64,000 bases of DNA, taken from assembly GCF_035594765.1 (NCBI RefSeq), contig NC_085844.1, positions 31,077,923 to 31,141,922 on the forward strand. The letters run 5' to 3'. Below, in pieces: positions 1-40,250 of this stretch. Each line of letters starts with the position of its first letter. The stretch's first letter is position 1. Both the position numbers and the translations under genes were made by a program. The stretch comes from Anolis carolinensis (taxonomy: Eukaryota). The notes beneath the pieces were generated by a model. It was not told where the DNA came from. It saw only the letters and a program-made list of their open reading frames with translations, and did no database searches.

Positions 1-1931
1 GATTTGATCACAGTGGAAGAGAAACAATTGGATCTAGATGGACAGATTCTGGTAACTCTAGTAGTTTTTCGAATATAGTTGCAGCCATGAGTAAAGGAAC
101 TGGCAGATATGGTTATGATTCTGTGGATCCATTCGAGGATAGGCTTTATTCAAATGGCTCTGAAAACAACAGTACAGATCTTTCGAAATTAAGTTATAAT
201 CATCCTAGGAGTAATTTAAATAAGATAACACATAATCAATTCAAGACATCTAATTCAGATAAATTGTACTTATTCATACGTGGTATGCCTTACACTGCAA
301 CAGAAGGTGACATACTAGCTTTCTTTGATGGTTTACAAGTGGATGGTATAATCATGTTAAAAACCAATGGGGTAAACAATGGAGATGGTCTGGTGAAATT
401 TGCTACACCGACTGATTGCACGAGAGGGTTGCAGCGTGATAGACAGTATATGCGCAACAGATTTATAGAAATATATCGCTCTGATGAAGGGACATGGATT
501 AAGAGCATGGGGAAAAAAGGATTACAAATGCATCAGGATTTCAGTGATGAACAGTTTTCTCATGATTTCAATAAAGAAAGACGCCCAGACTTCCAATCCT
601 CAAGAATGCATACCCGTTCAAAGTCTCCTCCAAGGAGGGTTGTGGCACATACCCATTCAAGATCCCCTCCTAAGAGGATTGCGGCACGTACCGTTTCGAG
701 GTCTCCCCCAAGAAGTGTTATGACACACAGCCATTCAAGGTCTATATCAAGGAGGGCTGTGGCACGCACTCATTCAAGGTCTCCACCAAGGAGGATTACA
801 GCACGCTCTCGTTCACCTTTATCTGGTTCAAGCCGGTCTCCTTCACCTCATAATGGGGAACATTATATACATGTCAAAAAATTGCCATTTCCTATTGAAA
901 AGAGAGAATTGAGAGCATTCTTTGAAGACCTAGATATACCTGACAGTCATATTACATTCCTTAAGATACCTGACAATAGACCAAACAAAGATGCAGTTGT
1001 GATGTTCAGATCAATGAGAGACTATTATTCTGCACTAGGTTATCACAAGTACCCTCTTCGTGGGCAAGAAATTTTACTTTTCCCCATTTCTAAAGAAGCA
1101 GTGATGCAGCTTGCTGGATTTTCTGAAAATGAAAAATCCCCAGAAAGATATCACATTGCAAACGAGAAAGGTGACTGGGATAGATATTCTGATCCAAAGA
1201 CATGTGTGTATGTTAGAAACTTTCCATATGATGTGACAAAACGTGAAGTCCGCACGTTTTTTGCAGGATTTAATATTAGCAATTATGACATTCATTTGCT
1301 TTACGATGACAAAGGAATTGGACTGGGAGAAACACTGGTCAAGTTCAGAACTGAAGATGATGCTCGGAAAGCTGAAAGCTTAAATCGCCGTCGGTTTTTG
1401 GGGACAGAGGTGCTTTTGAGATGTATATCTGAGAAGCAAATGAAAGAGTTTGGTGTTAATGTTCCACCAGTGTCAGATGGAAAGATGCAGGATCATATCC
1501 GTTCATATGAAAGAGGTCAACAAGGGAACCAAAAGCATCCATCTGATTATAGACATCCACCTAGTGATCTTATCAGCACATCTGATAATTTTAAAGATTC
1601 TGCTCCATTTACAGAGTTTGGTGAAGGTGCTCGTGGAAATTTTCCAGGTGGACGCTTCATGTCAGATTCTAATGTCAGTGGTAGTTCAAATTGCTTCACT
1701 CTGATTAAATTAAAGAATATACCATTTCAAGCAACACCAAATGAAATTCTGGACTTTTTTCATGGGTATAAGATTATTCCAGAATCTCTTTCAATCCAGC
1801 ACAACCAATATGGACTGCCTTCTGGTGAAGCTGTTATCGCCCTAGTAAATTATAATGAAGCCATGGCAGTTGTTAATGAATTAAATGATAGGCCACTCGG
1901 CCAACGCAAAATTAGATTAACTTTGGTATAG
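1..1931 (+). CDS. RBM12B: RBM12B copy 1 (5' end lies left of the window); multi-RRM RNA-binding protein
   Basis: Frame is open from base 3 (FDHSGRET...) to TAG at 1929-1931. RRM motifs LFIRGMPY, IHVKKLPF, VYVRNFPY and IKLKNIPF, and the C-terminal LNDRPLGQRKIRLTL, match the RBM12/RBM12B family. Colinear with the two full copies; synteny with TMEM67 and FAM92A. Confidence 0.92.
   Translation, partial: FDHSGRETIGSRWTDSGNSSSFSNIVAAMSKGTGRYGYDSVDPFEDRLYSNGSENNSTDLSKLSYNHPRSNLNKITHNQFKTSNSDKLYLFIRGMPYTATEGDILAFFDGLQVDGIIMLKTNGVNNGDGLVKFATPTDCTRGLQRDRQYMRNRFIEIYRSDEGTWIKSMGKKGLQMHQDFSDEQFSHDFNKERRPDFQSSRMHTRSKSPPRRVVAHTHSRSPPKRIAARTVSRSPPRSVMTHSHSRSISRRAVARTHSRSPPRRITARSRSPLSGSSRSPSPHNGEHYIHVKKLPFPIEKRELRAFFEDLDIPDSHITFLKIPDNRPNKDAVVMFRSMRDYYSALGYHKYPLRGQEILLFPISKEAVMQLAGFSENEKSPERYHIANEKGDWDRYSDPKTCVYVRNFPYDVTKREVRTFFAGFNISNYDIHLLYDDKGIGLGETLVKFRTEDDARKAESLNRRRFLGTEVLLRCISEKQMKEFGVNVPPVSDGKMQDHIRSYERGQQGNQKHPSDYRHPPSDLISTSDNFKDSAPFTEFGEGARGNFPGGRFMSDSNVSGSSNCFTLIKLKNIPFQATPNEILDFFHGYKIIPESLSIQHNQYGLPSGEAVIALVNYNEAMAVVNELNDRPLGQRKIRLTLV
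609..803 (+). repeat. 39-nt (13-aa) tandem RS-like repeat x5 inside RBM12B, also present in copies 2 and 3
   Basis: HTRSKSPPRRVVA / HTHSRSPPKRIAA / RTVSRSPPRSVMT / HSHSRSISRRAVA / RTHSRSPPRRITA. Confidence 0.9.
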
Positions 1932-2310
1932 ATAAAAAGATGGCTTGAAAATATTTGCATTGTTAATGTTGAGAAATGACATTTTCAAGTAGAAGTTTAC
2001 TATTTGTAAATACTTTTGACTGGTTTTAAAATTTAGGCCACTATTGTGTGGGATTTTATTAGACACTACTGGATCACCTTGGTAGTTCATGAAAACATGA
2101 CTTTGAAAGTATTTTGTTTTTTATCCCATAACCCCATGCAGATGTCTAATTTGTCTTTATTAATTCAATATAGCTGCACTTAGAGCTAGAAATTATGTTC
2201 TTCTGTGTATGTTAACAAGAAGACCCACCGTTTTTCTTGAATTCTTGTCCATTATTATGTTCAGTGGTATTTTGAGTATCTTTTTCATGCTGGTTCAGCA
2301 TTTCTTTTAA

Positions 2311-2316
2311 AATAAA
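2311..2316 (+). terminator. Candidate polyadenylation signal of RBM12B copy 1
   Basis: AATAAA ~380 nt after the stop with T-rich sequence downstream; same site present in copies 2 and 3. Confidence 0.45.
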
Positions 2317-4209
2317 AATATATCTATTGAAAATTGTGCTTATTTTTATTTGGTACAGTCTGGACACTTAAGAACTTACCTTGCTTAATAATGTGTACCT
2401 TGCTTAATAATGTGTTATTAAGATGTTATGTAATGTATGTGTGATTTTTATGATTGGAAACCGCCCTGAGTCCCGGGAGATAGGGCAGTATATAAATAAA
2501 GTTTTATTATTATTTTACTATTATTAAGTTAGGGCTGCATTTTGACAATGAATATATCCCATGTTTACCTTTGTAGCACTTGCAGAATATACTTAATAGA
2601 GGAAATACAGTGTAAGATAACATAGGAGGATTTCTTTTGCATTGTGTAGCTCTTCTGTGCACTTCAAGCCCATAGAGTAGCGGATGACCTGAAACAGGTT
2701 TACAAAATGTTGTTGCTTTGAGGAAAAAAAAATGAGTGCTTTTAAAAATCACGATGGAATAATAGTTCAGAACAGTTATAGGAAGGATTTATGGAGAAAC
2801 AAGTATAATTTTTCAGATTATAAAAAAAACCTGGTTTACTCATGAATTTTAACTGGTTAACCAAATCCCCATGCTAAGTCTATGAGACGCAAAACATTAA
2901 GAGTCCCTCCAGGCACTATCTCAAGCAGATATTGACAGGTTTGTAGCCGGGGGTGGGGGTGTGTGCTAGGGGTTCAACCCCCCCCCCTGAAATTTTCAAA
3001 ACCCCTCCCAAATTTTTTTAATGGCTACGGCCCTGCATAGAAGTATACAAAATACATGAACCTGGGGCCTGTGTGAAATTCAGATTTTCTTTCAATAGAT
3101 TCAATAGCACAGTATCTTTGTATTGGTAAGCCTAACTGGTTTTTAAGAAAAGCTTATCGAAACCTTCTTAGACTATCCTTTCCTGTCCAGCCTGTCTGTT
3201 CCAAGACATTATTTCAAAATGTTTGTACCTTTTTACATAGGAAGATGAAAAAAAATACTTATATATGGTATAGCTTTTCAAAGGAGTTAGTTTTCTCAGT
3301 ATATTTACAGTTTCAGATTTGTTGAGATGACTGGTTACGTAGGTTATTTTATAAGATATCCAAGCATATTTCTATGCCTTTATCTGTGGATATTCTAGAA
3401 TTTGTGGAAGTAACAGGTTGTTGAATGTGTGCTTCTTAAATTAACTATTGTTTATTTATTTAATATTTACTATATTTATACCCTGCTCTTAATCCCAAAG
3501 GGAACTCAGTGTGGCTTACAGAGTATGGCAAAGTTCAATGCCACATTATACAACAAATATATCAAATTATAAAACAATTAAAACATATAAATGCAATAAA
3601 CCAGATTGCTGACCTTGGGATGCTGAAATGTAGGCTGGTCTAAATCGAGTTCGGCAGCACCAAGCAGCCGGAGTGAGTGCCCAGAAGCTGAGTTAGGTGC
3701 AGCAAGGGAAACAAACGCTGCCCCTTCCCCCAAAGCCCCTGGTCATGGTACCTTCACTTCTTGCTTTTGTCTGAGGCCCCGCGGGAGTGGTTCTTTTTAT
3801 GCTCCAGCCTTTGGGCTCCAGCCTCTTGATTGCCATGATATAAAAATACAGTAAAATGGCAAGATACTAATAACACACCAGTGAAGTTTTTCATTTGGTT
3901 CAACAGCAGCAATCCACAAATTTGTATCCCTGTCACTTCAGTTACACTTTTAGGTATTCAGCATTACTGATGCAATTTTAAAACAACAAAGTTGAGGGTA
4001 ACTAAACTAGGATTTTTCTGCCTTACCCTTGTAAACTGTTTGAAAAGAAGAACCACTCCTTGATCTGTTGCATCTTGCTGTTAAATGACATCTTTTGTGA
4101 AGTAGGCTCTTGTCTGCAAATGTTTATGTGAAAAATAAATGATTACTCTTTAGTTGCCACATGTTTTCATGGCCTTTTTTTGCTGCAGCAGCAGGTTAAC
4201 AGGACTGTC

Positions 4210-4537
4210 ATGGGGCCTCTGGTGGCACAGTGTGTTAAAGTGCTGAGCTGCTGAACTTGCGGACCAAAAGGTCCCAGGATCAAATCCTGGGAGCGGAATG
4301 AGCGACCGCTGTTAGCCCCAGCTCCTGCCAACCTAGCAGTTCGAAAACATGCAAATGTGAGTAGATCAATAGGTACCGCTCCGACGGGAAGGTAACGGCG
4401 TTCCATGCAGTCATGCTGGCCACATGACCTTGGAGGGGTCTATAGACAACGCCGCCTCTTCGGCTTAGAAATGGAGATGAGACCAACCCCCAGAATCGGT
4501 CATGACTGGACTTAATGTCAGGGGAAACCTTTACCTT
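4210..4537 (+). mobile_element. Sauria SINE, full length
   Basis: tRNA-like head GGGGCCTCTGGTGGCACAG, body GTGAGTAGATCAATAGGTACCGCT, ACCTTT tail; near-perfect TSD TAA(C/T)AGGACTGTC. Confidence 0.9.
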
Positions 4538-4908
4538 TAATAGGACTGTCGCCTGCTTGCTCCTCAAAACTGCCCTTCAAAACCACTGCTCTTATATTGT
4601 TTCACTGATATAAATCTATTTTATGCGTATAATGTGTTTAATAGACCTTCTGTTGCCATTCTGTTGTGTGTTGAGCACATACTACAGGTGGAAGACATGG
4701 ATTACAAACCCTTACATAATTTTTCCAAGATTTACAGGGCACTTCAATTTGTGGCAGGTGTTACCCCAGACTTCCTTAGTTTCACAGCAATATCTATAGG
4801 GTTATATGGTGGTTAGATGCACTATATTACTTAAGCATTGGGAGGTGAATGCACATTCTAGGGCTAAATTGTTTGGGAATGATATCTTTAAAAAGCATTC
4901 TTGTAGAG

Positions 4909-5593
4909 CAGGGGTTCCCAAACTAAGGCCCCCGGGGCCGGATGCGGCCCTCCAAGGTCATTTACCTGGCTCCTGCCCTCAGTTTTATAATGTAATATTT
5001 TTATATCATTTTAAATAATATAATATATTGTATATACATATAATATTGATAATAATATTATAATGTTATACAATACTAATAATAATACCATATAATAATA
5101 TTAATTATATGATATATATTACATATAATATTACAGTATAGTGGTATAGTTCAATATAGTGCTAATATTGTGCTATGCTAATAATATAATACATTGTATG
5201 TACATACACCTGCTCTGAGTCCCCTTCGGGGTGAGAAGGGCGGGATATAAATGTAATAAATAAATGTAGTAAATGAATAAATAAATACATAATTTTAGAC
5301 TTAGGCTCGCCCAAACTCTGAAATGACTTGAAGGCACATAACAACAACAACAATCCTAATTAACTTGACTATCTCACTGGCCAGAAGCAGGCCCACACTT
5401 CCCATTGAAATCCTGATAGGTTTATGTTGGTTACAATTGTTTTCATTGTTGTTGTTGTTTTGTACTACAAATAAGACATGTGCAGTATGCATAGGAATTT
5501 GTTCATTTTTTCCCCTCCAAATGATAATTCGGCCCCTCCACAGTCTGAAGGATTGTGAACCGGCCCTCTGCTTTATAAGTTTGAGGACCCCTG
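4909..5593. mobile_element. Non-autonomous hAT element (Charlie/OC1-like TIRs)
   Basis: TIRs CAGGGGTTCCCAAACT...AGTTTGAGGACCCCTG; 8-bp TSD TTGTAGAG (4901-4908 / 5594-5601); empty site at 38304-38311. Confidence 0.9.
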
Positions 5594-5804
5594 TTGTAGA
5601 GACTAGGGACAAGAAGCAGGAAATAACTGTTATGACCAAGAAAATGGATAGAAACACTTAATCTAATAAGGGACTCTTTTAGTAATTTTCCTTGCCTGAC
5701 AAGGTTTTAATAGTTCAAGGGATCTTTGTTTCTTCAGGCCTGCCTGGCCTAGATCCAAATCCCCAAGGCCATTTACCTGCCCTAAACTTTAGACTTCGGT
5801 CTAA

Positions 5805-7119
5805 AGCATATCTGCCAAGACTGGAATCCTCAAGGTGGCTATCATTTTCAGTTGTGCACCCTGTCCTGCCTTTTGGTTTGGCCTCAGCTCTGAGGGTATT
5901 TGCCAAATTATTGATGGTTGCAGGGCATACATCTGTTCCCATATCTGGACGATGTTCTTGTGAGAGCCATGTCTTTTTAGGGAGCTTTGCAGGATAGACT
6001 ATAAAAGTGAGCATGAATTGGTTTCGGTCTCATGATTTTTTGATAAACCAAGAAAAGCCAGCTGGTTCTCTTTAACAATCATCCACCCAGGGGCTGTGAT
6101 TGATATGGCTAAGAGCATGATTTACATCTCAGAAGAGATGTAACAATCTGGAATCAGAGATACAAAGTGTTCTAAACTGAATGTTTTCATGGCCTTAGAT
6201 TTCTTCGCCCCATGATTCAGATTGTACTTTGGCCCAAATGCCACCCAAATCCCCCGTGGTTTTGCAGTCACGTCAATCTATGATCACAAGACACAGTTAT
6301 ATATTATTGCTCTTTTCATATCAGGTCACAGAGTACCATTGTATTCCGACCTGTCTAATCTTCAGAAGCGCTCTCCATTTGGAGAGCCCCTTAATATCAC
6401 ACTAAGTATAAATGTCAGTCTTCTGGATTGAGCTTATTGGCAGGGAAGATTGGTTCAAGGACTTGGAGGTCACAGCATGAATTGGAGCTGAGTGGCCCAT
6501 CTAGTTCTCCACTTTGCCACATTATTCAAGGGGAAACATCTACTGGTCCCCACAGACAGCACAACCACACAAACATTAAAAATATAGGAGATCAAGTCTT
6601 TCTCACGTTACAGGAAGACGTCTCCTGTTCCAACAGTCTGAGAGAACAGTCCTTTTCAGTGCGAAATGTCCAGGGAATCATCAATTTCTAGGCAGAAGCT
6701 TATGACTGGGGAACATGGTTATTTTCTCAGCATGATAGCAGGATCAGATTCTGTGCAGTGGATACGTTTGTGTTGCTGACAAATCCCCAGAGCCACAAAA
6801 TCCTCACCAGGCTTCCCTGTTCAGGCACAAAGGGCAAGGATGCTCGATAGTGTCAGTGGCACAGGGTCTTGTGTTTGACTTCCCCCTTTCTCATATCCAG
6901 GCTGGTTAGGAAGAAGTCTCAAATCATTCTCACTGTGCCTTATTGACTCGGGAGACTGGTTTTCTGCCCTGACAGCCAAAGTCACTGTCCTGAACACCAG
7001 GACTTGATAATGCAGGAACCCATTCAACATTCAGATGCGACTTGCCTCCAGTCAGCCACATGGAGGTTTAACAGAAATCAGAAAAATTGGTTATGTGAAT
7101 TTTATGATCAGCATAGATC
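5805..7119 (+). mobile_element. Degenerate DIRS1-like retrotransposon (RT-RNaseH relic), cut by the duplication junction
   Basis: LPFGLASALRVFAK from 5866; PYLDDVLV with YLDD at 5942-5953; FLINQEK; RNaseH-like GKHLLVPTDSTT from 6531; many frameshifts. Confidence 0.7.
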
Positions 7120-7280
7120 AAAGGTACAAGATTGCATCTAATTTTTCATCCCATGAGTGGAGTGATTTCTATGTGTAAAACTCTCTTGCTAATGAAGGGT
7201 CCTTTTGCTCACAAAATTGAAAATTGGAAACAACTCACAGAACTTCTCTGTTGGAAAAAACGGACTATCAAAATTAATTA

Positions 7281-7403
<123 letters not shown>

Positions 7404-7488
7404 TCAAACCATTTGAAAATTAACTAAGATAACTTGAAAAAGTTTTTGTAACTGAAGCTGTCTGCTTTATTAGATGTGAAACACTCAC

Positions 7489-7574
7489 TGTGTCTTCTGG
7501 ACATTTCTCACAGGTAATAGATCCACCGTTATTAGTAATGATCTTGAATCCTGGTTGACAAGCACAAGATGTAT
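7489..7574 (-). CDS. TMEM67: TMEM67 (meckelin) exon 2, orphan duplicate A
   Basis: tttcag|AT ACA TCT TGT...GAC ACA|gtgagt; peptide (D)TSCACQPGFKIITNNGGSITCEKCPEDT resembles human [29 protein letters not shown]; phase fits exon 1; no exon 3 in the unit. Confidence 0.9.
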
Positions 7575-8415
7575 CTGAAATACATAGAATTGCTAATTGT
7601 ACCAAACAGCTACAAATTAAAAAGAAAATTAACAATACTCTTTCTTTAAATCTAAAGTGTCTTCTATTAAATTTCACAGTTGCTTTAAAACAACTCCAAA
7701 TTTCCCATAATCCCTGTCATTTAAATAGTTTGTGTGTGTGTCTATGTATATATAAAATGCACATGTTTTATTGATTAGCTTTTCGGCCTTATCGAAACAT
7801 TTAGCGAACACATTTAGCACATACACATACAGCATATAATCCACATTACAAAGTTAAAATAAGCAAGCTGTTAACAAAGGGTCAAGATCCTGATCCAGAT
7901 CAAACATCTGCATCACCTCTACAATTTACACCAAACTTCTCCAAATAATGTAGTTCTCAACTGACTTGCTGTAAATAGAAAAAGGGCTATTTTATATGTT
8001 ATTTTAGCATTCTGGTCAACCAGTAAAATGTAATTGTAATAAAGGATCTCAGTGTGTCTTTTGTATAATTTATGGTTCTAGGTATTGGATTCTCTCTTTC
8101 TTACACAAGTTAAACGGTATATGTGTGCTATGTTCTACTTCTGCAGCTCTACAGATGCAAAATAGTTCATTATAGGGGACTTGATTAAATCTTCCATGTC
8201 TGACCATTGTGTCCAGCTGTTCAAATCTACTTTTGGTAAAAACCCTCCCGAGGTGTTTAAGCATTTCTGTATTTAGAAATAGGTCTGTTTGAAAAGTATG
8301 TTTCAAAAGACTTAGCCATTTCAATGAGCCAGCTTTGCAGAGGGTAGCAATGTCTTTCTAAGCTTTTATATTAGTATTCATTGTACAACAATATTTGGAT
8401 CTAGTTCTTCTAGGA

Positions 8416-8542
8416 CAGTGGTTCTCAACCTGTGGGTTCCCAGGCCTACAACTGCCAGAAATCCCAGCCAGTTTACCAGTTGTTGGAATTTCTGGGAGTT
8501 GAAGGCCAAAACATCTGGGGACCTACATGTTGAGAACCACTG
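8416..8542. mobile_element. hAT MITE with SPIN-like TIRs
   Basis: CAGTGGTTCTCAACCTGTGG...GTTGAGAACCACTG; 8-bp TSD TTCTAGGA. Confidence 0.85.
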
Positions 8543-8550
8543 TTCTAGGA

Positions 8551-8840
8551 GATTTAGATATAGAATCGGAAGTCCACAACTCTTAATGTATTTTGTCAAT
8601 TGAACTAGCCAAGAGGTCTGACGTTGATTTTTTTTTTGTCTGCTCTAACAGGCACAGTTTTGGTAGTCTCTCATTTGCTGTGGCATTCAATTTTACCCAG
8701 TAGTTGTATGCCCTAGATTTGGATAAACCACCAACTGTATATACGCCCAGTTCTGCTCTTACTGCGCCAATTGGGGTCCTTTTGTCCACTCTCAGGAAGC
8801 TTCGCAGGCACTGTGATTGAGATGGGTCTAATAATGGTAC
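8551..8840 (-). mobile_element. Old LINE ORF2 C-terminal fragment
   Basis: Minus-strand peptide FLRVDKRTPIGAVRAELG...YNYWVKL...RLPKLCL resembles the post-RT region of non-LTR elements; interrupted by a SINE and a MITE. Confidence 0.5.
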
Positions 8841-8844
8841 CTGT

Positions 8845-9057
8845 CCTGCCAACCTAGCAGTTTGAAGACATGCAAATGTGAGTAGATCAATAGGTACCGC
8901 TCCGGCGGGAAGGTAACGGCGCTCCATGCAGTCATGCTGGCCACATGACCTTGGAGATGTCTATGGACAACGCCGGCTCTTCGGCCTAGAAAAGGAGATG
9001 AGCACCAACCCCCATGGTTGGTCACGACTGGACTTAACGTCACGGGAAACCTTTACC
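8845..9057 (+). mobile_element. Sauria SINE, 5'-truncated
   Basis: Matches the 3' half of the SINE at 4210-4537; ACCTTTACC tail. Confidence 0.85.
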
Positions 9058-9315
9058 TATAGGCCCCAAACTTCAGCTCCATATAAAAGCATAGTTAGTG
9101 ATGAATTCTGACTGGAAAAGCCTATGATAATGTGGCATGTCTCATTAAGAGCCACATCCACTGTTTTAGCGTGGTGAGATATCGCCCACACTGGGCATGC
9201 GTAGTCAGCAGCAGAGTAGCAAAGCATAAGGGCAGTATAGTGCTGTTAGGAATTGTTGTAAAGTCCAAAACTGGAGAGCCAAAGTTTGCCCATGCCTGGT
9301 ATAGTGCATCTACAC

Positions 9316-9478
9316 CAGGCATGGGCCAACGTGGGCCCCCGAGGTGTTTTGGCCTTCAACTCCCACCATTCCTAACAGCCTCAGGTCCTCTCCTTTTCCC
9401 CCTCAGCCGCTTAAGGGCTTAGGAATGGTGGGAGTTGAAGCCCAAAACACCTGGAGGGCCCACGTTGGCCCATGCCTG
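9316..9478. mobile_element. hAT MITE (CAGGCATGGG TIR family)
   Basis: Long TIR CAGGCATGGGCCAACGTGGGCCC; 8-bp TSD ATCTACAC. Confidence 0.9.
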
Positions 9479-9679
9479 ATCTACACTGAAGAGTTAATAC
9501 ATTTTGACACCACTTTAATTGCCGTGGCTCAATGCTATGGCTCATGGGTGTTCTAGGTTGGCTTCATCAAACTACAACTCCCGAGATTTCATAGCACTGA
9601 GCCATGGGAGTTAACGTGGTGTCAAACTGCATTCCTTCTACTGTGCAGATGCCCGTCGCGTCCGCCCCTGTGGTCTCAC

Positions 9680-9866
9680 CCCTGTGGCCTTTGGTCTGGG
9701 ATGCCCCGCACTGCCCACAGGAGAGAGTGGCGATGTCGAAGTACTGAGTGGCGGCGCAGCTCTGAGGCTGCCGCCAAGGGAGGAAGAAGGCCTGGCCGCC
9801 CGCGAGGCCTGCGTGCAGCGGGAGCAGGAGCAGCGCCATTCCCAGCCAGCGCCTCGGCGTCGCCAT
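9680..9866 (-). CDS. TMEM67: TMEM67 exon 1 (signal peptide + start of Cys-rich domain), orphan duplicate A
   Basis: MATPRRWLGMALLLLPLHAGLAGGQAFFLPWRQPQSCAATQYFDIATLSCGQCGASQ resembles human [33 protein letters not shown]; donor AGG G|gtgaga; CpG-rich. Confidence 0.92.
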
Positions 9867-9872
9867 GGTAAC
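9859..9872. promoter_or_regulatory. RFX X-box overlapping the TMEM67 start codon (A)
   Basis: GTCGCCATGGTAAC fits GTNRCC-N0-3-RGYAAC; TMEM67 is a ciliary gene. Confidence 0.7.
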
Positions 9873-10061
9873 TGAGGCCTCCCTTTCAGCCACGCCCACC
9901 CGCTCAGGGCCGTCTCGTTAAGGGTTGCGCCCCACTTTGGGACTTCAACTCCCAGAAGGCTTAGCTGGTGTAGCCAATGGACGGTGATCCTGGGAGTTGA
10001 AGTCCGAAAAAAATCCCTAGAGGCAGTCCCTGAAACTCATGCCTACGGGAAGCCACGAGGA

Positions 10062-10579
10062 TTAGAAAGAACGGAGCTGGACCACTCTTAACAACCACTA
10101 TGTCAGACTACACAGAGAAACCACTGAAATCCACAAGAGTGGGGGTAATTTCAACAGAAAGGAGGAAACCACGAAAATGAACAAAATCTGGCTACCAGTA
10201 TTTAAAAAAACGCTAAAAGCAGAACAGTAGATAAAAAGCAACACTAAAAAACAGGGGAATACCAGACCAGAAAAAAATCAGGGCCAGCTAACACCTCCCA
10301 ACAAAGGATTCCCCCAGGCAGGAATCAGCCAGGACCTGAAGCTGCAAGGTTATTCAGTGCTAATCAAGGTGATTTAATTGCAACATCCACACTTCCACTA
10401 ACAGACAAGAGTTCTTTCTCCCACCCTGGACCTTCCGCAGATAAACCTCCCTTGCCTGGTTTCCAATATAGCTCACAATGTCAGAGATGCCTGCCATAGA
10501 TGTGGGTGAAATGTCAGGAGAGAATGCTTGAACATGCTTGAAAATGGCCACGCAGCCTGGAAAACTCACAGCAACCCAT
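10062..10579 (+). mobile_element. Penelope-like retroelement fragment
   Basis: Terminal motif GATGCCTGCCATAGATGTGGG...GGAAAACTCACAGCAACCCA, shared with other copies in the window. Confidence 0.7.
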
Positions 10580-10944
10580 GGAAAAAGTTTGTGTAGCCTA
10601 TTTTGCTATAGTTTTTCAATGAATATCTGCGTGATTATCAAGAAAAAAGTGCCAATCCACAGCAGAAATCATGGGATCAGAAAGGCATTTATTGGAAAGC
10701 AAAGCTCCCTTGGCATCACTGGGCAGATACCATGGCAAGCACACCTTACTTGCTTAGACTGGCATTACAATCCTTTCAAAATCAATGTGAATTTAACAGG
10801 AATTTGAAAAAAGAACAGGAAATGACACCCACTCAAAGTATGTTTATTTGTATTACAAAGGCTCTTACAAAGTTTCATTATCCAACATTAACTCCAATCA
10901 GGGCTCTGAACTAGAAAAAACGGTCTATGCCTTTCAGGCCCAGA

Positions 10945-11280
10945 GAAGAAAGGGGGGGGGGGGGAGAAAAGAAATTGGCTGCTGCTAGGTGACATGTTTA
11001 TGCAGGGAAAGGAGAAAGGAAAGCAAGAGGAAAGGACAGGAAAAGGAGAAGGGAGGAAAAAGGAAAGGAAGAGAAAGGAAAAGGGACAGGGTATGAGGGG
11101 AAGAAAAGAGAAAGAAAGGACAAAAGGAGGAAGAAAAATGGTGGGAAGGAAGAGAAAGGAAAGGAAAGGTATGAGGGAAAGGAAGAAAAAGAGGGGGAGA
11201 AAGGAGGGAAAGTAAGGGAAAGATAGAAAAGAGAGGGAGAAATGTGCACCAGGGAAACGGGAGAAGGAAGACAAAAAGAA
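10945..11280 (+). repeat. GA-rich low-complexity tract
   Basis: Almost pure purine GAAAG-type sequence; repeated at ~25203-25540. Confidence 0.9.
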
Positions 11281-11354
11281 AATGTATAGTTCTATATATA
11301 AAAACAGCTCAAAAGTAAATACCTGGCTGAGCCATGGCTAGAGGTGGCCAAATA

Positions 11355-11677: not shown

Positions 11678-11752
11678 TAGGTACAAATTTAAGTGCACAG
11701 CACAAGCGCGTTGCCAAGATCCTCCAAGCTGCTTCTAAAACAGCGAAGGAAT

Positions 11753-12519: not shown

Positions 12520-12649
12520 AAATGTATCGTTCTATATATAAGAACAGCTGAAGAGTAAATTCCTGGCTGAGCCGTGGCTGCAGGCGGCCAAATAGTTACA
12601 CATTAATGTGCAGAGCAATAAGAATAAAAAAGAGACAGTAACAGGAAAG

Positions 12650-13400: not shown

Positions 13401-13419
13401 GTGGTCAAAATGAGCCCTG

Positions 13420-30321: not shown

Positions 30322-30362
30322 TTGATTTCACAGACTTTATCAGGCCTTTCAAGAAGAAACAG
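30322..30362 (+). other. Probable 5'UTR exon of RBM12B copy 3
   Basis: Copy of 16064-16104. Confidence 0.6.
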
Positions 30363-30933
30363 GTAAGCTTCTAGAAGCTTAATACTTCTGTTCTCTCAGG
30401 TCATGGCTTTTTCCAAACTTGTAGCAGAAAAAGGAAGAGGTATGGTTGGATCCTAATCAAAAGAAAAAATAAATAAAGGGGAAACGATGGATAAACTTAA
30501 CGATTTACTAGTTGTGTGTGATGTCTGAAAATCGAATTGGTTTCATTTTTGTTTGGAAGTGCTGAAACATCTTTTCTGGTTACAATGTTTTCTATGCTTT
30601 TGATATCAGAGTAGGGGTTATTTAATTTCTGGTGGATTATAACTTAATGTGAAAGCTACTGTATAGTCAGTCATAGTCAGAGCGACTAAAATTGTTGCTT
30701 TAATGATTGGGAGCACTTGTAGAATAGTCCAGTGCTGTATACTGAGATGTTAATTGTTAGCAGGTGTAGAGATGAAATAGGGCTCTCGTGGTTGCATATG
30801 AAGGAGTTACTTTTTCATTTTGAATACTTTCAAATAGTATGGCTTGAAACGACACTGTTCCAGTGTAATTAAGCTTGTTGTCATGTGTACGTTTTTGTCC
30901 ACAGGTCATTTTTTGCTGTGGGTTGAACTCAGA

Positions 30934-33126
30934 ATGGCTGTAGTCATCCGTTTACAGGGGCTTCCTGTTGTTGCGGGTCCTGCAGATATTCGCCATTTGT
31001 TCTCAGGATTGAATATTCCTGATGGAGGTGTATATATCACTGGAGGAGAAAAAGGAGAAGCTTTTGTTATATTTGAAACAGATGAAGATGCACGGCAAGC
31101 AATGAGTTATTCTGAGAGGTATATAAAAAACTCACGTATTGGGTGTTTTCTCAGCAGCAAAACAGAAATGCAGAACGTGATAGAACTCAATAGGAAAAGA
31201 TTTGATCACAGTGGAAGAGAAACAATTGGATCTAGATGGATAGATTCTAGTAACTCTAGTAGCTTTTCGAATATAGTTGCATCCATGAGTAAAGGAACTG
31301 GCAGATCTGGTTATGATTCTGTGGATCCGTTTGAGGATAGGCTTCATTCAAATGGCTCTGAAAACAGCAGTACAGATCTTTCGAAATTAAGTTATAATCA
31401 TCCTAGGAGTAATTTAAATAAGATAACACATAATCAATTCAAGACATCTAATTCAGATGAATTGTACTTATTCATACGTAGTATGCCTTACACTGCAACA
31501 GAAGATGACATAATTGCTTTCTTTGATGGTTTACAAGTGGATGGTATGATCATGTTAAAAACCAATGGGGTAAACAATGGAGATGGTCTGGTGAAATTTG
31601 CTACACCGACTGATTGCACGAGAGGGTTGCAGCGTGATAGACAGTATATGCGCCACAGATTTATAAGAATATATCGCTCTAATGAAGAGACATGGATTAA
31701 GAGCATGGGGAAAAAAGGATTACAAATGCATCAGGATTTCAGTGATGAACAGTTTTCTCATGATTTCAATAAAGAAAGACGCCCAGACTTCCAATCCTCA
31801 AGAATGCATACCCGTTCAAAGTCTCCTCCAAGGAGGGTTGTGGCACATACCCATTCAAGATCTCCTCCTAAGAGGATTGCGGCACGTACCGTTTCGAGGT
31901 CTCCCCCAAGAAGTGTTATGACACACAGCCATTCAAGGTCTATATCAAGGAGGGCTGTGGCACGCACTCATTCAAGGTCTCCACCAAGGAGGATTACAGC
32001 ACGCTCTCGTTCACCGTTATCTGGTTCAAGCCGGTCTCCACCTCATAATGGGGAACATTATATACATGTCAAAAAATTGCCATTTCCTATTGAAAAGAGA
32101 GAATTGAGAGCATTCTTTGAAGACCTAGATATACCTGACAATCATATTACATTCCTTAAGATACCTGACAATAGACCAAACAAAGATGCAGTTGTGATGT
32201 TCAGATCAATGAGAGACTATTATTCTGCACTAGGTTATCACAAGTACCCTCTTCGTGGGCAAGAAATTTTACTTTTCCCCATTTCTAAAGAAGCAGTGAT
32301 GCAGCTTGCTGGATTTTCTGAAAATGAAAAATCCCCAGAAAGATATCACATTGCAAATGAGAAAGGTGACTGGGATAGATATTCTGATCCAAAGACATGT
32401 GTGTATGTAAGAAACTTTCCATATGATGTGACAAAACGTGAAGTCCGCACATTTTTTGCAGGATTTAATATTAGCAATTATGACATTCATTTGCTTTACG
32501 ATGACAAAGGAATTGGACTGGGAGAAACACTGGTCAAGTTCAGAACTGAAGATGATGCCCGGAAAGCTGAAAGCTTAAATCGCCGTCGGTTTTTGGGGAC
32601 AGAGGTGCTTTTGAGATGTATATCTGAGAAGCAAATGAAAGAGTTTGGTGTTAATGTTCCACCAGTGTCAGATGGAAAGATGCAGGATCATATCCGTTCA
32701 TATGAAAGAGGTCAACAAGGGAACCGAAAGCATCCATCTGATTATAGACATCCACCTAGTGATCTTATCAGCACATCTGATAATTTTAAAGATTCTGCTC
32801 CATTTACAGAGTTTGGTGAAGGTGCTCGTGGAAATTTTCCAGGTGGACGCTTCATGTCAGATTCTAATGTCAGTGGTAGTTCAAATTGCTTCACTCTGAT
32901 TAAATTAAAGAATATACCATTTCGAGCAACACCAAATGAAATTCTGGACTTTTTTCATGGGTATAAGATTATTCCAGAATCTCTTTCAATCCAGCACAAC
33001 CAATATGGACTGCCTTCTGGTGAAGCTGTTATCGCCCTAGTAAATTATAATGAAGCCATGGCAGTTGTTAATGAATTAAATGATAGGCCAATCGGCCAAC
33101 GCAAAATTAGATTAACTTTGGTATAG
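30934..33126 (+). CDS. RBM12B: RBM12B copy 3, 730 aa
   Basis: MAVVIRLQGLP start; acceptor at 30904/30905; intact ORF. Confidence 0.95.
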   Translation: MAVVIRLQGLPVVAGPADIRHLFSGLNIPDGGVYITGGEKGEAFVIFETDEDARQAMSYSERYIKNSRIGCFLSSKTEMQNVIELNRKRFDHSGRETIGSRWIDSSNSSSFSNIVASMSKGTGRSGYDSVDPFEDRLHSNGSENSSTDLSKLSYNHPRSNLNKITHNQFKTSNSDELYLFIRSMPYTATEDDIIAFFDGLQVDGMIMLKTNGVNNGDGLVKFATPTDCTRGLQRDRQYMRHRFIRIYRSNEETWIKSMGKKGLQMHQDFSDEQFSHDFNKERRPDFQSSRMHTRSKSPPRRVVAHTHSRSPPKRIAARTVSRSPPRSVMTHSHSRSISRRAVARTHSRSPPRRITARSRSPLSGSSRSPPHNGEHYIHVKKLPFPIEKRELRAFFEDLDIPDNHITFLKIPDNRPNKDAVVMFRSMRDYYSALGYHKYPLRGQEILLFPISKEAVMQLAGFSENEKSPERYHIANEKGDWDRYSDPKTCVYVRNFPYDVTKREVRTFFAGFNISNYDIHLLYDDKGIGLGETLVKFRTEDDARKAESLNRRRFLGTEVLLRCISEKQMKEFGVNVPPVSDGKMQDHIRSYERGQQGNRKHPSDYRHPPSDLISTSDNFKDSAPFTEFGEGARGNFPGGRFMSDSNVSGSSNCFTLIKLKNIPFRATPNEILDFFHGYKIIPESLSIQHNQYGLPSGEAVIALVNYNEAMAVVNELNDRPIGQRKIRLTLV

Positions 33127-34987
33127 ATAAAAAGATGGCTTGAAAATATTTGCATTGTTAATGTTGAGAAATGACATTTTCAAGTAGAAGTTTCTATTTG
33201 TAAATACTTTTGACTGGTTTTAAAATTTAGGCCACTATTGTGTGGGATTTTATTAGACACTACTGGATCACCTTGGTAGTTCATGAAAACATGACTCTGA
33301 AAGTATTTTGTTTTTTATCCCATAACCCCATGCAGATGTCTAATTTGTCTTTATTAATTCAATATAGCTGCACTTAGAGCTAGAAATTATGTTCTTCTGT
33401 GTATGTTAACAAGAAGACCCACCGTTTTTCTTGAATTCTTGTCCATTATTATGTTCCGTGGTATTTTGAGTATCTTTTTCATGCTGGTTCAGCATTTCTT
33501 TTAAAATAAAAATATATCTATTGAAAATTGTGCTTATTTTTATTTGGTACAGTCTGGACACTTAAGAACTTACCTTGCTTAATAATGTGTACCTTGCTTA
33601 ATAATGTGTTATTAAGATGTTATGTAATGTATGTGTGATTTTTATGATTGGAAACCGCCCTGAGTCCCGGGAGATAGGGCAGTATATAAATAAAGTTTTA
33701 TTATTATTTTACTATTATTAAGTTAGGGCTGCATTTTGACAATGAATATATCCCATTTTTACCTTTGTAGCACTTGCAGAATATACTTAATAGAGGAAAT
33801 ACAGTGTAAGATAACATAGGAGGATTTCTTTTGCATTGTGTAGCTCTTCTGTGCACTTCAAGCCCATAGAGTAGCGGATGACCTGAAACAGGTTTACAAA
33901 ATGTTGTTGCTTTGAGGAAAAAAAAATGAGTGCTTTTAAAAATCACGATGGAATAATAGTTCAGAACAGTTATAGGAAGGATTTATGGAGAAACAAGTAT
34001 AGGGAAGAATGATTTATTACTACATAGAAGCAGGCCTGTAGTGAGTATATAAATAAAGTTTTGTTATTATTTTATTATTATTAACTAGGGCTGCATTTTA
34101 ACAATGAATTTATCCCATGTTTACTTTTGTAGCACTTGTAGAATATACTCTTTGTATTGGTAAGCCTATCTGATTTTTAAGAAAAGCTTATCGAAATCTT
34201 CTTAGACTATCCTTTCCTGTCCAGCCTGTCTGTTCCAAGACATTACTTCAAAATGTATGTACCTTTTTACATAGGAAGATGAAAAAAATACTTATATATG
34301 GTGTAGCTTTTCAAAGGAGTTAGTTTTCTCAGTATATTTACAGTTTCAGATTTGTTAAGATGACTGGTTATGTAGGTTATTTTATAAGATATCCAAGCAT
34401 ATTTCTATGCCTTTATCTGTGGATATTCCAGAATTTGTGGAAGTAACGGGTTGTTGAATGTGTGCTTCTTAAATTACCTATTGTTTATTTATTTAATATT
34501 TACTATATTTATACCCTGCTCTTAATCCCAAAGGGAACTCAGTGCGGCTTACAGAGTATGGCAAAGTTCAGTGCCGCATTATACAACAAATATATCAAAT
34601 TATAAAACAATTAAAACATATAAATACAATAAAACAGATTGCTGACCTTGGGATGCTGAAATGTAGGCTGGTCTAAATGGAGTCCGGCAGCACCAAGCAG
34701 CCGGAGTGAGTGCCCAGAAGCTGAGTTAGGTGCAGCAAGGGAAACAAACGCTGCCCCTTCCCCCAAAGCCCCTGGTCATGGTACCTTCACTTCTTGCTTT
34801 TGTCTGAGACCCCGTGGGAGTGGTTCTTTTTATGCTCCAGTCTCTGGGCCCCAGCCTCTTGACTGCCACGATATAAAAATACAGTGAAATGGCAAGATAC
34901 TAATAACACTCCAGTGGAGTTTTTCATTTGGTTCAACAGTAGCAATCCACAAATTTGTATCCCTGTCACTTCAGTTATACTTTTAGG

Positions 34988-35661
34988 CAGGGGTCCTCAA
35001 ACTTTTGAAGCAGAGGGCCGGTCCACAATCCTTCAGACTGTTGTGGGTCTGAATTATCATTTGAAAAAAAAATACAAATTTCTATGCATACTGCACATGT
35101 CTTATTTGTAGTGAAACAACAACAACAACGAAAGAACAATACAATATTTAAAAATGAAAACAATTTTAACCAACATAAACCTATCAGGATTTCAATGGAA
35201 AGTGTTGGCCTGCTACTGGCCAATGAAATAGTCAAGTTAATTAAGATTGTTGTTGTTATGTGCCTTCAAGTCATTTCAGACTTTGGCCAGTCCCAAGTCT
35301 AAAATTAATTATTTATTTACTGCATTTATTTACTACATTTATATCCCAGCAGGTATATGTACATACAATATATTATATTATTAGCATAGCACAATATTAG
35401 CATTATATAATTCTATATTGAACTATATCACTATACTATTATATGTTATGTAATATATAACATATAATTAATATTATTATATGGTATTATTATTAGTCTT
35501 ATATTGTATAACATAGTATTATTATCAATATTATATGTATATACAATATTATATTATTAAAACTAATACAAAAATATTATATTGTAAAACTGAGGGCGGG
35601 GGCCAGGTAAAGACCTTGGAGGGCCGCATCTGGCCCCCGGGCCTTAGTTTGGGGACCCCTG
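34988..35661. mobile_element. Non-autonomous hAT element (same family as 4909-5593, opposite orientation)
   Basis: CAGGGGTCCTCAAACT...AGTTTGGGGACCCCTG; TSD CTTTTAGG; empty sites at 3947-3954 and 20341-20348. Confidence 0.9.
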
Positions 35662-35935
35662 CTTTTAGGTATTCAGCGTTACTGATGCAATTTTAAAACA
35701 ACAAAGCTGTGGGAAACTAAACTAGGATTTCTCTGCCTTACCCTTGTAAACTGTTTGAAAATCAGCCATGTGAAAGAAGAACCACTCCTTGATCTGATGC
35801 ATCTTGCTGTTAAATGACATCTTTTGTGAAATAGGCTCTTGTCTGCAAATGTTTATGTGAAAAATAAATGATTACTCTTTAGTTGCCACATGTTTTCATG
35901 GCCTTTTTTTGCAGCAGCAGGTTAACAGGACTGTC

Positions 35936-36265
35936 ATGGGGCCTCTGGTGGCACAGTGTGTTAAAGCGCTGAGCTGCTGAACTTGCGGACCAAAAGGTCC
36001 CAGGTTTAAATCCTGGGAGCGGAATGAGCGCCCGCTGTTAACCCCAGCTCCTGCCAACCTAGCAGTTCGAAAACATGCAAATGTGAGTAGATCAATAGGT
36101 ACCGCTCCAACGGGAAGGTAACGGCGTTCCATGCAGTCATGCTGGCCACATGACCTTGGAGGGGTCTATGGACAACGCCGGCTCTTCGGCTCAGAAATGG
36201 AGATGAGCACCAACCCCCAGAGTCGGTCACGACTGGACTTAACATCAGGGGAAACCTTTATCTTT
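35936..36265 (+). mobile_element. Sauria SINE (paralog of 4210-4537)
   Basis: Same insertion site and flanks. Confidence 0.9.
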
Positions 36266-36384
36266 ATTAGTACTGTTGCCTGCTTGCTCCTCAAAACTGC
36301 CCTTCAAAACCACTGCTCTTATATTGTTTCACTGATATAAATCTATTTTATGTGTATAATGTGTTTAAGAGATCTAAAGACCTT

Positions 36385-36545
36385 AAAGGCACCAATTCTC
36401 ATCTGATCATGGAAGCTATGCAGGGTCATCTGCAGTTCTTGGATTGGAGTCTGTTAACGAGTATCAAAGGAAGGAACTAAGAACACTACTTCTGAGTATT
36501 CCTTATCTTTACAAACTATGAAATTCATGCTATTGAAGGTGCATG
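36385..36545 (+). mobile_element. Degenerate 5S rRNA-derived SINE (5S-Sauria-like)
   Basis: CTCATCTGATCATGGAAGCTATGCAGGGTC...CTTGGATTGGAG resembles 5S CTCGTCTGATCTCGGAAGCTAAGCAGGGTC...CTTGGATGGGAG. Confidence 0.6.
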
Positions 36546-38769
36546 CAGACATACACACACAATGGCTTTGAAATGTTTTTCATCTTGTTTTTTGTTTACA
36601 TTGCCTTATTCCAGTATTCTGAAGAAGTGGTGTATATGTGGCATAGCCATCACTGCATACAACCTTTAAGGTTAAAATATTACCACCCTGAATTGTAGTT
36701 TTATAAAAGTTAATAATTCTACTCTAAAATAAAATATTCTTGATAGCATATACATTATTTAAATGGGTTTCCTGTACAGCTAGAGGAGCATTGTAACTTG
36801 AGTGTCCAGCTTTTGTAAGACTGCTAATTAAGAAATATGTATGGTCTTGCTGTGGATTGCTGTTTTTCAGACCACATTACATTTTGCTGTAACTACAATA
36901 CATGGATATGTAGAATAAATGGGGGTGAGAATTAGTTGATAGATGAGTGTTGCATAGTTTGCTTATCCTGGGCTTTTCCCCACTTAATTTGAATAGTCAG
37001 TATAGTTCAACCAAAAGTGACTTAATATCATTAAGAATTCACCTGAGTTTAAGCAGTGCAGGGGAGAGTGAGTACCGTTTCATAAATACTTAAATGTGTT
37101 TTTAGAGGGGGATAAGAGACCTCACAGTAAAAAAAAAAAATTCATAAAATCAGCCATCTTTATAACACTGATAAGGCAATGTAGATGTTCCAATAAAAGG
37201 GAAAAAATATTGTCGCAAATCTCCATACCATTGAATTAAATATAGGTTCAGTGTCTATAATAGAAATTTTCTAATGATGAAGGCATATTCATCCAGCATA
37301 CTGTTGTTTAGTCCATTATTTTGTATTGCAAATCATGTCTGACAGGTCTGCGTGTTTTAATTAAGCAGAATGATTATATAATAAAGCTAAGCTAAACTGT
37401 ATTCCTTATTGCCCATTTATGGCAAAGAATGAAGGTGGTTATTCTCTGGGTTAGAGGAGAACACACACAACTTGGGTTTCTTCCACCACTGTCCAGAGAC
37501 AGGTGGAAAGAACAATTGTCTGAAACGGGCTTTGTTTACACCTCCTTTTCAACCATCTTAAGCGACCAGTTCTTTCTCCTGCCTGTGCCCGGAGTCTTTT
37601 CTGGATGTATTTCTGGCTTGCCTCTGGCTTGCCCAATTAGATCTATAATCTTTTTGCTTTCTTTCCCTCTCATTTCATAAATAGGATTATTTGCAAAGCC
37701 TCCTCCTGGGACCTACTCATTAGAAGCCCCAGTCCTCCAAAGAAGATTTTGATAAGGCTGTCTTCTGCTCATAGTAGCAAAAAGAAAGCAGAATCTCATA
37801 TTCATTACTCTGAAGATTCAGATTGTGATTCCAGTATTCATTTCCTACCCCATGGATGTTATTGCTAAGAAGGGAGGAATGGTTGGAATCAGGTTACCTG
37901 TTGTGAATTCATTTGGCACCTTCTTGGTTTCAGGGCCTTGGCCCAAAAGAAGGCTTTTGCAAGGAGGCCAAGGAAAAGCAAACTGAGGACTTCTTAAAAG
38001 AAGGCCCTTTAAGCCTTGGCAATCATTGCTTCATCAGCTAGTTCACTAGTTATGCATGCCATTCTGTTGTGAGTTGAGCACATACTATAGGTGGAAAACT
38101 TGGATTACAAACCCTTGCATAATTTTTCCAAGATTTACAGGGCACTTCAATTTGTGGCAGGTGTTACCCCAGACTTCCTTAGTTTCACAGCAATATCTAT
38201 AGGGTTATATGGTGGCTAGATGCACTACATTACTTAAGCATTGGGAGGTGAGTGCACATTCTAGGGCTAAATTGTTTGGGAATGATATCTTTAAAAAGCA
38301 TTCTTGTAGAGACTAGGGACAAGAAGCAGGAAATAACTGTTATGACCAAGAAAGGGGATAGAAGCGCTTAATCTAATAAGGGGCCCTTTTAGTCATTTTC
38401 CTTGCCTGACATGGTTTTAATAGTTCAAGGGATCTTTGTTTCTTCAGGCCTGCCTGGCCTAGATCCAAATCCCCAAGGCCATTTACCTGCCCTAAACTTT
38501 AGACTCTGGTCGCCCAAAGTCTGAAACGAGTTGAAGACAAATAACAATCCTAATTATCTTGACTATCTGATCAGCCAGGAGGAGGCCCCCACTTCCCATT
38601 GTAATACTGGTAAGTTTATGTTGGCTAAAATTGTTCATTTTAAATATTGTAAATATTGTAGTGTATATTACATTGTAGTTTGTCTCCCCCCCCCCCCCCC
38701 AAATCTATAGTCCAGAAGTCTGAGGGACTGTGAACCGGCCCTCCGCTTAAAAAGTGTAATGATCCCTGC

Positions 38770-40250
38770 CCTAAAGGATGGAGGTTGACAGCAGTTCTGA
38801 AGTTGAGATGCCTCCAGCAGAGGGCATGATTTTCTTGGGAAAGCTGGGCTCTAACAACTACAGAGATGGATCTTGTAGTCTGGCACAGTTTGGCAATGGT
38901 CATGCTGACCTGCACACTGGAGGTATTGCTTGTTTCTCTGGACTTTGCAGAAGCATATCTGCCAAGACTGGAATCCTCAAGGTGGCTATTCCGACCTGTC
39001 TAATCTTTAGAAGCGCTCTCCATTTGGAGAGCCCCCTAATATCACACAAAGTATAAATGTCATTCTGGATTGAGCTTATTGGCAGGGAAGATTGGTTCAA
39101 GGACTTGGAGGTCACAGCATGAATTGGAGCTGAGTGGCCCATCTAGTTCTCCACTTTGCCACATTATTCAAGGGGAAACATCTACTGGTCCCCACAGACA
39201 GCACAACCACACAAACATTAAAAATATAGGAGATCAAGTCTTTCTCACGTTACAGGAAGACGTCTCCTGTTCCAACAGTCTGAGAGAACAGTCCTTTTCA
39301 GTGCGAAATGTCCAGGGAATCATCAATTTCTAGGCAGAAGCTTATGACTGGGGAACATGGTTATTTTCTCAGCATGATAGCAGGATCAGATTCTGTGCAG
39401 TGGATACGTTTGTGTTGCTGACAAATCCCAAGAGCCACAGAATCCTCACCAGGCTTCCCTGTTCAGGCACAAAGGGCAAGGATGCTCGATAGTGTCAGTG
39501 GCACAGGGTCTTGTGTTTGACTTCCCCCTTTCTCATATCCAGGCTGGTTAGGAAGAAGTCTCAAATCATTCTCACTGTGCCTTCTTGACTCGGGAGACTG
39601 GTTTTCTGCCCTGACAGCCAATGTCACTGTCCTGAACACCAGGACTTGTTAATGCAGGAACCCCTTCAACATTCAGATGCGACTTGCTTCCAGTCAGGCA
39701 CATGGAGGTTTAACAGAAATCAGAAAAATTGGTTATGTCAATTCTATGATCAGCATAGATCTTTCTTGCCAGAGGCTGGCAACTGTAAATTTTTAAGGTC
39801 ACATAGAAACTATTAATGGTATAAATCAAATTACCTTCGAAGTCCACTATATTTTTTGTTTTGCATCTCCTGGCTTTCCAGAGAAAGGTCTGGATTTAGG
39901 TCTGAGTCTTAATACATGAAATTGACAACTTGCATTGGTCTTATCTGCAGCTTTGCCATGGGACCCCATTTTCTTCTCCCCCCATGTTTAGCAGTTTCTT
40001 AGGAACATATCCCCTCCACTTAGGGACTGTTTTCCATCATGAACACAAAGAATGCCACATTTAGTACTTATTGTGAAGGTACCTTCTGGGTAATTGAGAG
40101 GTTGAATCCACCCTTTCCCAGCATAACTGCTCACGTTTTGGTTCTAAGATGCAATGGCTTCTTTACTTTTCCTGTTTTATTGTTTCTCTGGGTTGTCTGC
40201 ATTCAGGTTTGCTAATAAGTGAACTGGTCTCTAAGAAGAGGAATCAGTCT
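38770..40250 (+). mobile_element. DIRS1-like relic continuing into a tyrosine-recombinase-like region (may begin further left, ~37400)
   Basis: RNaseH-like motif as at 6531; FPEKGLDLGLSLNT at 39875-39916 resembles the DIRS YR N-terminal FLQxGLxxGLSxxT; boundaries approximate. Confidence 0.6.

Follow-up and report, generated by a model that had tools for sequence, protein, structure and literature searches.

The stretch of Anolis carolinensis DNA analyzed here (contig NC_085844.1, positions 31,077,923 to 31,141,922 of the forward strand; assembly rAnoCar3.1, CM069370.1, approximately 31.08-31.14 Mb; 64,000 nucleotides in all, hereafter the window) contains three open coding exons of the RNA-binding protein gene RBM12B arranged head-to-tail. 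We conclude, with a probability of about 0.85, that this array is genuine and arose by a recent tandem segmental duplication in the lineage of A. carolinensis. The units follow one another head-to-tail and a single novel junction is reused at each boundary, the arrangement by which segmental duplication through unequal crossing-over is recognized. The window contains no Ns. A stretch that overlaps the left end of the window and reaches beyond it is denoted L001; position 1 of the window corresponds to L001:10266.

The three RBM12B frames, already recognized in the initial annotation made from the sequence alone, are the following (CDS, coding sequence; aa, amino acids):
1-1931, plus strand: coding exon of RBM12B copy 1, running off the left edge; the CDS starts 264 nt left of the window and the whole product is 731 aa long (P0123)
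16676-18868, plus strand: CDS of RBM12B copy 2, 730 aa (P0122), with a splice acceptor at 16646/16647
30934-33126, plus strand: CDS of RBM12B copy 3, 730 aa (P0121)

The translation of L001:10001-12196 is identical to P0123, and the translations of all three frames are exact members of one 90% cluster of A. carolinensis proteins; the public annotation already includes gene models for all three genes. The proteins, which are 95-97% identical to one another, contain several RRMs, with the N-terminal RRM starting at the initiator methionine (three RRM_1 stretches were detected in copies 2 and 3, and two in copy 1 as truncated by the window), and their precomputed domains, PF28442, PF00076 and PF28441, are the same as those of named RBM12B proteins. 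Among the 120 matches listed, named RBM12B proteins of reptiles, birds, mammals and amphibians range from 98% (A. carolinensis) to approximately 35% identity; A. sagrei stands at 76% and the other squamates, likewise with proteins named RBM12B, at 46-60%. RBM12 appears among the matches listed only from an E-value of 1e-117 downwards, so that the nearest relatives are RBM12B. In addition, the whole CDS lies in one uninterrupted exon between TMEM67 and CIBAR1, as is characteristic of RBM12B.

The units were delineated by comparing the window with itself (self-BLAST). Positions 6342-19510 align with 20602-33787 (units 2 and 3) at 99.33% identity over 13.2 kb, with an offset of 14,260 bp; unit 1 matches unit 3 at 98.7% identity (1-2807 against 31199-34001) and unit 2 at 97.0% identity (1-2593 against 16941-19510). 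The approximately 14.26-kb repeat and the junctions at 7119/7120 and 21379/21380 proposed in the initial annotation were confirmed by this comparison. The terminal parts of the unit tails (6342-7119, 20430-21379 and 38815-39761) are mutually homologous and end at a common base, past which the sequence continues into the start of the next unit at 7119 and 21379, and into the unique flank at 39761. The lengths of the tails vary through kilobase-scale insertions and deletions (indels; UTR, untranslated region):
1932-7119, plus strand: tail of unit 1 (3' UTR and downstream DNA), 5.2 kb, with indels unlike those of the other two tails
7119-7120, no strand: junction 1, at which TMEM67 intron 3 follows directly on the downstream end of a unit; the homology to the true right flank extends exactly to this point
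18869-21379, plus strand: tail of unit 2, cut to 2.5 kb by two unit-specific deletions, with joints at 20340/20341 and 20430/20431
21379-21380, no strand: junction 2, the same joint as junction 1
33127-39761, plus strand: tail of unit 3, 6.6 kb, passing into the unduplicated right flank at 39761/39762
40895-43126, minus strand: 3' part of CIBAR1/FAM92A (295-aa product, PF06730; CDS end at 40895), the right-hand neighbor, outside the array

Across 161 aligned bases, junctions 1 and 2 are identical except for one base near the right end. On the left, where the array had been suggested to extend further, the immediate neighbor of copy 1 is instead the cilia gene TMEM67, intact and on the minus strand. 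Its 983-aa product belongs to the Meckelin Pfam family, and the CDS begins at L001:3418, 6.6 kb from the ATG of RBM12B copy 1, with TMEM67 upstream. The upstream parts of units 2 and 3 have their counterpart in L001:1302-9359, at 98.9% identity. On the right, the end of the CIBAR1 CDS lies 1.1 kb beyond the array. The gene order is TMEM67 (intact, minus strand), RBM12B-1, TMEM67 exons 1-3 with RBM12B-2, TMEM67 exons 1-3 with RBM12B-3, and CIBAR1, so that the expected TMEM67/RBM12B/CIBAR1 neighborhood is matched on both sides and the placement of the array between TMEM67 and FAM92A/CIBAR1 originally proposed holds. Because the intact TMEM67 gene lies directly left of copy 1, the number of RBM12B copies in this assembly is exactly three.

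To describe the divergence among the units, the three were aligned and each variable site was classed by the odd-one-out unit. In unit-2 coordinates, the sites are distributed as follows:
8139-17400: unit 1 odd at 72 sites, unit 2 at 7, unit 3 at 5
17401-19200: unit 1 odd at 7 sites, unit 2 at 24, unit 3 at 9
19873-20372: unit 1 odd at 19 sites, unit 2 at none, unit 3 at 1
20902-21379: unit 1 odd at none, unit 2 at none, unit 3 at 10

The pattern in 8139-17400, where unit 1 is odd at 72 of the 84 variable sites, differs from that in 17401-19200 (chi-square p = 1e-12). Between units 2 and 3, 6 of 7,500 positions differ in 9121-16623 versus 31 of 2,000 in 17124-19124 (Fisher p = 5e-16), the junction-proximal tails of units 1 and 2 show 0 differences in 478 positions, and all three units are identical over approximately 2 kb around TMEM67 exon 1. 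Thus, different pairs of units are the closest in different blocks, which makes the array a mosaic. The tract of raised divergence between units 2 and 3 starts 725 bp inside the CDS (a single difference was found in 16676-17400), crosses the stop codon, with 6 differences in 503 bp, and extends approximately 330 bp past it; the CDS has a dS of 0.019, synonymous divergence being raised as much as non-synonymous divergence. Judging from these substitution patterns, the tract is a product of exchange between copies and not of selection on the protein, given that it crosses the stop codon and that synonymous sites are equally affected. The mosaic divergence as a whole points to inter-copy exchange, and an earlier annotation contains a protein that is mosaic in another way, which suggests the same; such exchange is no evidence of the fluctuating copy number that the initial annotation considered probable.

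These observations are compatible with a history of three steps. A single head-to-tail duplication would have created the one novel junction, the duplicated segment having one end in TMEM67 intron 3 and the other approximately 1.1 kb short of the CIBAR1 stop codon, with the promoters of both TMEM67 and RBM12B and the complete RBM12B gene in between. The two units would then have diverged by approximately 0.9% before a much more recent unequal crossing-over between them, presumably within the indel-rich stretch at approximately 20.36-20.9 kb, gave rise to the third unit and reused the junction. Patchy non-allelic gene conversion between the units would account for the third step. The 3' tract of unit 3, with its 9 private sites in 1.8 kb, is not accommodated by a simple two-step model; these sites may stem from exchange with a diverged allele absent from this assembly.

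The array could be an assembly artefact, with two units (or one) present in the animal and the third being a haplotype variant placed in tandem, and several points leave room for this reading. The 6 differences over 7.5 kb between units 2 and 3 could equally separate two alleles; the independent evidence consists of contigs assembled from public sequencing runs, so that depth over the units gives no measure of copy number; no single contig spanning a whole unit with both junctions was seen among them, the longest bridging pieces being under 1.1 kb; and the earlier annotation contains only two distinct protein types. However, unit 2 has the junction on both sides and a tail of its own with two private deletion joints, and contigs from independent runs bridge these structures: junction 2 is bridged in X13 (20825-21665) and X3 (21327-21888), which represent two studies, contigs of X3 (19967-20604) and X13 (20073-20604) span both deletion joints, and those of X4 and X10 span one joint each. 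The four runs come from four different studies, the joints being covered in three to four of these, and the structures are therefore not private to one assembly. The unit-2-type 3' part of the CDS is present in three of the runs, with 1-2 differences per 0.9-1.1 kb, and the proteins of the earlier annotation include one form resembling copy 1 (5 differences) and another that combines copies 2 and 3 in a different mosaic (12 and 11 differences). Furthermore, the three tails differ by kilobase-scale indels, the window is free of gaps, and the 14.3-kb unit is, we assume, probably shorter than the long reads typical for such assemblies. The bridging contigs, the proteins of the earlier annotation and the private tail structures taken together make a false duplication unlikely.

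Neither great age nor adaptive change offers a better account of the array. The duplication might be an old one, shared with other iguanian lizards and kept nearly identical by concerted evolution, given that Sceloporus and Phrynosoma carry several RBM12B-like genes on one chromosome, and that the anole units do exchange sequence, conversion being expected to cluster paralogs by species. In a quick maximum-likelihood tree of 33 rows hand-picked from the matches and cluster members (the rest of the 120 listed matches, including mammals, amphibians, fishes and unnamed Logan proteins, was left out), the A. carolinensis RBM12B proteins are monophyletic (support 100) and sister to A. sagrei, as the lineage-specific array anticipated in the initial annotation implies, and the phrynosomatid paralogs and the two Paroedura genes represent separate duplications. 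In Sceloporus, one RBM12B copy lies beside TMEM67 exons 1-3, and no TMEM67 piece was found within 10 kb of the second copy, 56 kb away; in Phrynosoma, one copy adjoins an intact Meckelin gene. The phrynosomatid paralogs are deeply diverged from one another. The anole units are more than 99% identical through introns, intergenic DNA and repeats, well beyond the genes alone, and both anole junctions are identical. The locus thus duplicates repeatedly across squamates, the anole event being its own, and we regard a shared old duplication as unlikely. Adaptive diversification, in which the copies would be retained by positive selection toward new RNA-binding specificities, we likewise regard as unlikely. 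Nei-Gojobori dN/dS is 1.07 for copies 1 and 2, and RBM12B evolves fast in squamates, as the identity to A. sagrei given above illustrates; the other pairs yield 0.46 (copies 1 and 3) and 0.58 (copies 2 and 3), and all three values, which come from small counts of 28-44 substitutions, are consistent with relaxed constraint after duplication. Polarization of the replacements with A. sagrei and ten other species assigns ten derived changes to copy 2, seven to copy 1, seven to copies 2 and 3 jointly and one to copy 3 alone. Several affect residues that do not vary among any of the outgroups: Gly183Ser, located in RRM2 and shared by copies 2 and 3, and Ser451Pro, Val504Ile, Arg605Lys and Glu682Gln in copy 2. 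The pattern fits relaxed constraint following duplication, with adaptive change not demonstrated. Positive selection was also considered as the cause of the raised divergence itself and rejected on the same grounds that identify the exchange tract, which crosses the stop codon and has equally raised synonymous sites. We therefore retain the young tandem segmental duplication as the explanation of the array.

Each RBM12B copy has an open single-exon frame with RRM domains and a CpG island of its own. The islands assigned to RBM12B in the two full units are as follows (o/e, observed/expected):
12601-13600, no strand: CpG island, candidate RBM12B promoter and putative first non-coding exon, unit 2; CpG o/e up to 0.98
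26801-27800, no strand: CpG island from the island scan, candidate RBM12B promoter, unit 3

Within the unit-2 island, block 13316-13395 is conserved with Phrynosoma. The initial annotation had assigned a CpG promoter to each full unit; the islands do recur approximately 14.2 kb apart, and their promoter role is that of candidates. Directly 5' of the ATG at 16676, a strong polypyrimidine tract and CAG form the acceptor at 16646/16647. The 747-aa forms of RBM12B (P0124 and P0001) start at an ATG at 16625, upstream of this acceptor, and these models affect 16625-16676 and, in unit 3, 30883-30934. Their start ATG is probably intronic; given its position upstream of a strong acceptor, the 730-aa product from the ATG at 16676 appears the likelier form, and an upstream non-coding exon is probable. 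A further protein, P0002 (984 aa, MetaClust), is an old model that fuses parts of two RBM12B copies with internal gaps, a sign of confusion over the array in earlier assemblies or annotations.

Units 2 and 3 also carry copies of the 5' part of TMEM67, each with its own CpG island:
9680-9866, minus strand: coding part of TMEM67 exon 1, unit 2 (ATG at 9866, 187 nt, ends in phase 1)
7489-7574, minus strand: copy of TMEM67 exon 2, unit 2 (86 nt)
7298-7391, minus strand: copy of TMEM67 exon 3, unit 2 (94 nt, phase 1 at its end; both splice sites, AG acceptor and GT donor, preserved)
21558-21651, 21749-21834 and 23939-24125, minus strand: TMEM67 exons 3, 2 and 1, respectively, unit 3 (ATG at 24125)
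9601-10200, no strand: CpG island from the island scan over the TMEM67 start (orphan promoter), unit 2
23801-24400, no strand: CpG island from the island scan over the TMEM67 start, unit 3

The exon pieces match human Meckelin (PDB 7fh1) at residues 26-76 (exon 1, E-value 6e-8), 75-107 (exon 2, 7.5e-6) and 105-135 (exon 3, 8.5e-11). They are stop-free, with canonical AG/GT splice sites and an intact reading frame, and in unit 2 the 99-aa frame from the exon-1 ATG matches its counterpart in the parent TMEM67 at 100% identity. No further TMEM67 matches were found in the window beyond the exon 1-3 cassettes, which amount to approximately 122 codons versus the approximately 980-1000 aa, with PF09773 and a transmembrane region, of full-length Meckelin. 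Limited to exons 1-3, the cassettes are therefore TMEM67 gene fragments, and because exon 3 is included, the left breakpoint of the duplicated segment lies in TMEM67 intron 3. The initial annotation had correctly placed the 5' end of TMEM67 in both full units, with an extent (exons 1-2) that falls one exon short, exon 3 being the piece that matches Meckelin 105-135.

The public annotation contains a 270-aa model without a Pfam family that runs on the minus strand from 24125, the unit-3 TMEM67 ATG, to a TAA at 2512-2510; it spans the whole of unit 2 antisense to RBM12B copy 2, and its stop is located downstream of RBM12B copy 1. Both the end of exon 3 and the start of exon 2 are in phase 1, so that a splice from exon 3 to the exon 2 of the next unit would stay in frame. 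Rather than a new gene family, the 270-aa model is probably a by-product of the duplication of the 5' TMEM67 exons. At most, the orphan cassettes would give rise to truncated, probably non-functional transcripts, antisense through the RBM12B unit to their left.

The intact TMEM67 gene itself differs from the units in intron 1, where L001:1-1301 shows no alignment with window positions 7120-7741, nothing aligning left of L001:1302. This intron contains at least 1.3 kb of extra DNA compared with the units, including a copy of a dispersed repeat at L001:8-261, and either the parent gained this DNA by insertion once the duplication had taken place, or the ancestor of units 2 and 3 lost it by deletion.

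The dispersed repeat, approximately 215-320 bp in length with 80-93% identity among copies, is present in both orientations in the unit tails, TMEM67 intron 1 and CIBAR1 introns, and it draws enormous contig depth in the public runs around 22600-23800. Its copies in the window are located at:
4221-4539
8844-9058
23103-23317
35947-36269
51542-51864
53356-53680
62026-62353

The remaining elements lie outside the array. A CIBAR1 intron contains an A-rich region (47035-49550) with an RVT_1 open reading frame (ORF) on the plus strand (47663-48139, E-value 1.6e-18), a relic of a LINE-like (long interspersed nuclear element) retrotransposon, and an ORF with HTH_48, the helix-turn-helix domain of Mos1-type transposases, is encoded on the minus strand at 42538-42810 (E-value 4.5e-6). 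Beside the latter, 42003-42199 is a GC-rich imperfect palindrome of approximately 200 bp that scores as a CpG island. Another CpG island lies at 57001-57600, to the right of the exons of CIBAR1, and probably represents the promoter of this gene, as would fit its minus-strand orientation with the CDS end at 40895. A Pfam search of ten ORFs near the breakpoint and in the unit-3 tail detected no transposon protein domains, no Rfam RNA families were found in the window, and window scans identified no tRNAs or short tandem repeats.

The likely effect of the array, as far as it can be read from the DNA alone, would be raised or diversified RBM12B dosage under relaxed constraint. The orphan TMEM67 promoters are predicted to fire leftward, antisense to the preceding RBM12B unit. 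A more ambitious interpretation would combine these features into a copy-number-variable, still-exchanging cluster with diverging RNA-binding specificity, in which spliced antisense transcripts arise from the orphan TMEM67 promoters and pass through the neighboring RBM12B copy. Changed specificity would then be exemplified by Gly183Ser, which alters an invariant RRM2 site in copies 2 and 3, and the transcripts would join exon 3 in frame to the exon 2 of the next unit, as the 270-aa model hints. If this were the case, the duplication would have made its own regulatory circuit or a new secreted N-terminal fragment of Meckelin; we consider such a combination improbable.

The duplication is real, young and lineage-specific; it is of a known kind, and its mechanism is not unusual. 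Its value is that of a clean, well-bounded, very young gene duplication in a model lizard, with a reused junction, a second step dated by divergence and visible conversion tracts, and it identifies RBM12B as an RNA-binding protein gene that evolves fast and duplicates repeatedly in squamates. For annotation, the implications are that the 747-aa starts are probably intronic and that the 270-aa model is probably a duplication by-product. By itself, the array opens no new biological question.

Among known systems, no paper on RBM12B arrays in reptiles was found. As in the anole, Sceloporus undulatus, Phrynosoma platyrhinos and Paroedura picta have several RBM12B genes on one chromosome, beside TMEM67. 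The two S. undulatus copies located, however, are 56 kb apart, belong to separate clades and are far more diverged than those of the anole, with their 95-97% protein identity and 14.3-kb units. The mouse genes Rbm12b1 and Rbm12b2, known here from the gene symbols used in mouse expression studies, likewise represent a lineage-specific extra copy, mouse having two copies versus three in the anole. More generally, segmental duplications that comprise a whole gene together with the truncated 5' end of its neighbor, expanded by unequal crossing-over, form a familiar class. The anole array shares with this class the head-to-tail units, the reused junction, the mosaic of exchange tracts, and the orphan promoter with the first exons of the neighboring gene, whereas the particular gene pair and the in-frame fit of TMEM67 exon 3 to the exon 2 of the next unit are specific to the anole, the mechanism being ordinary.

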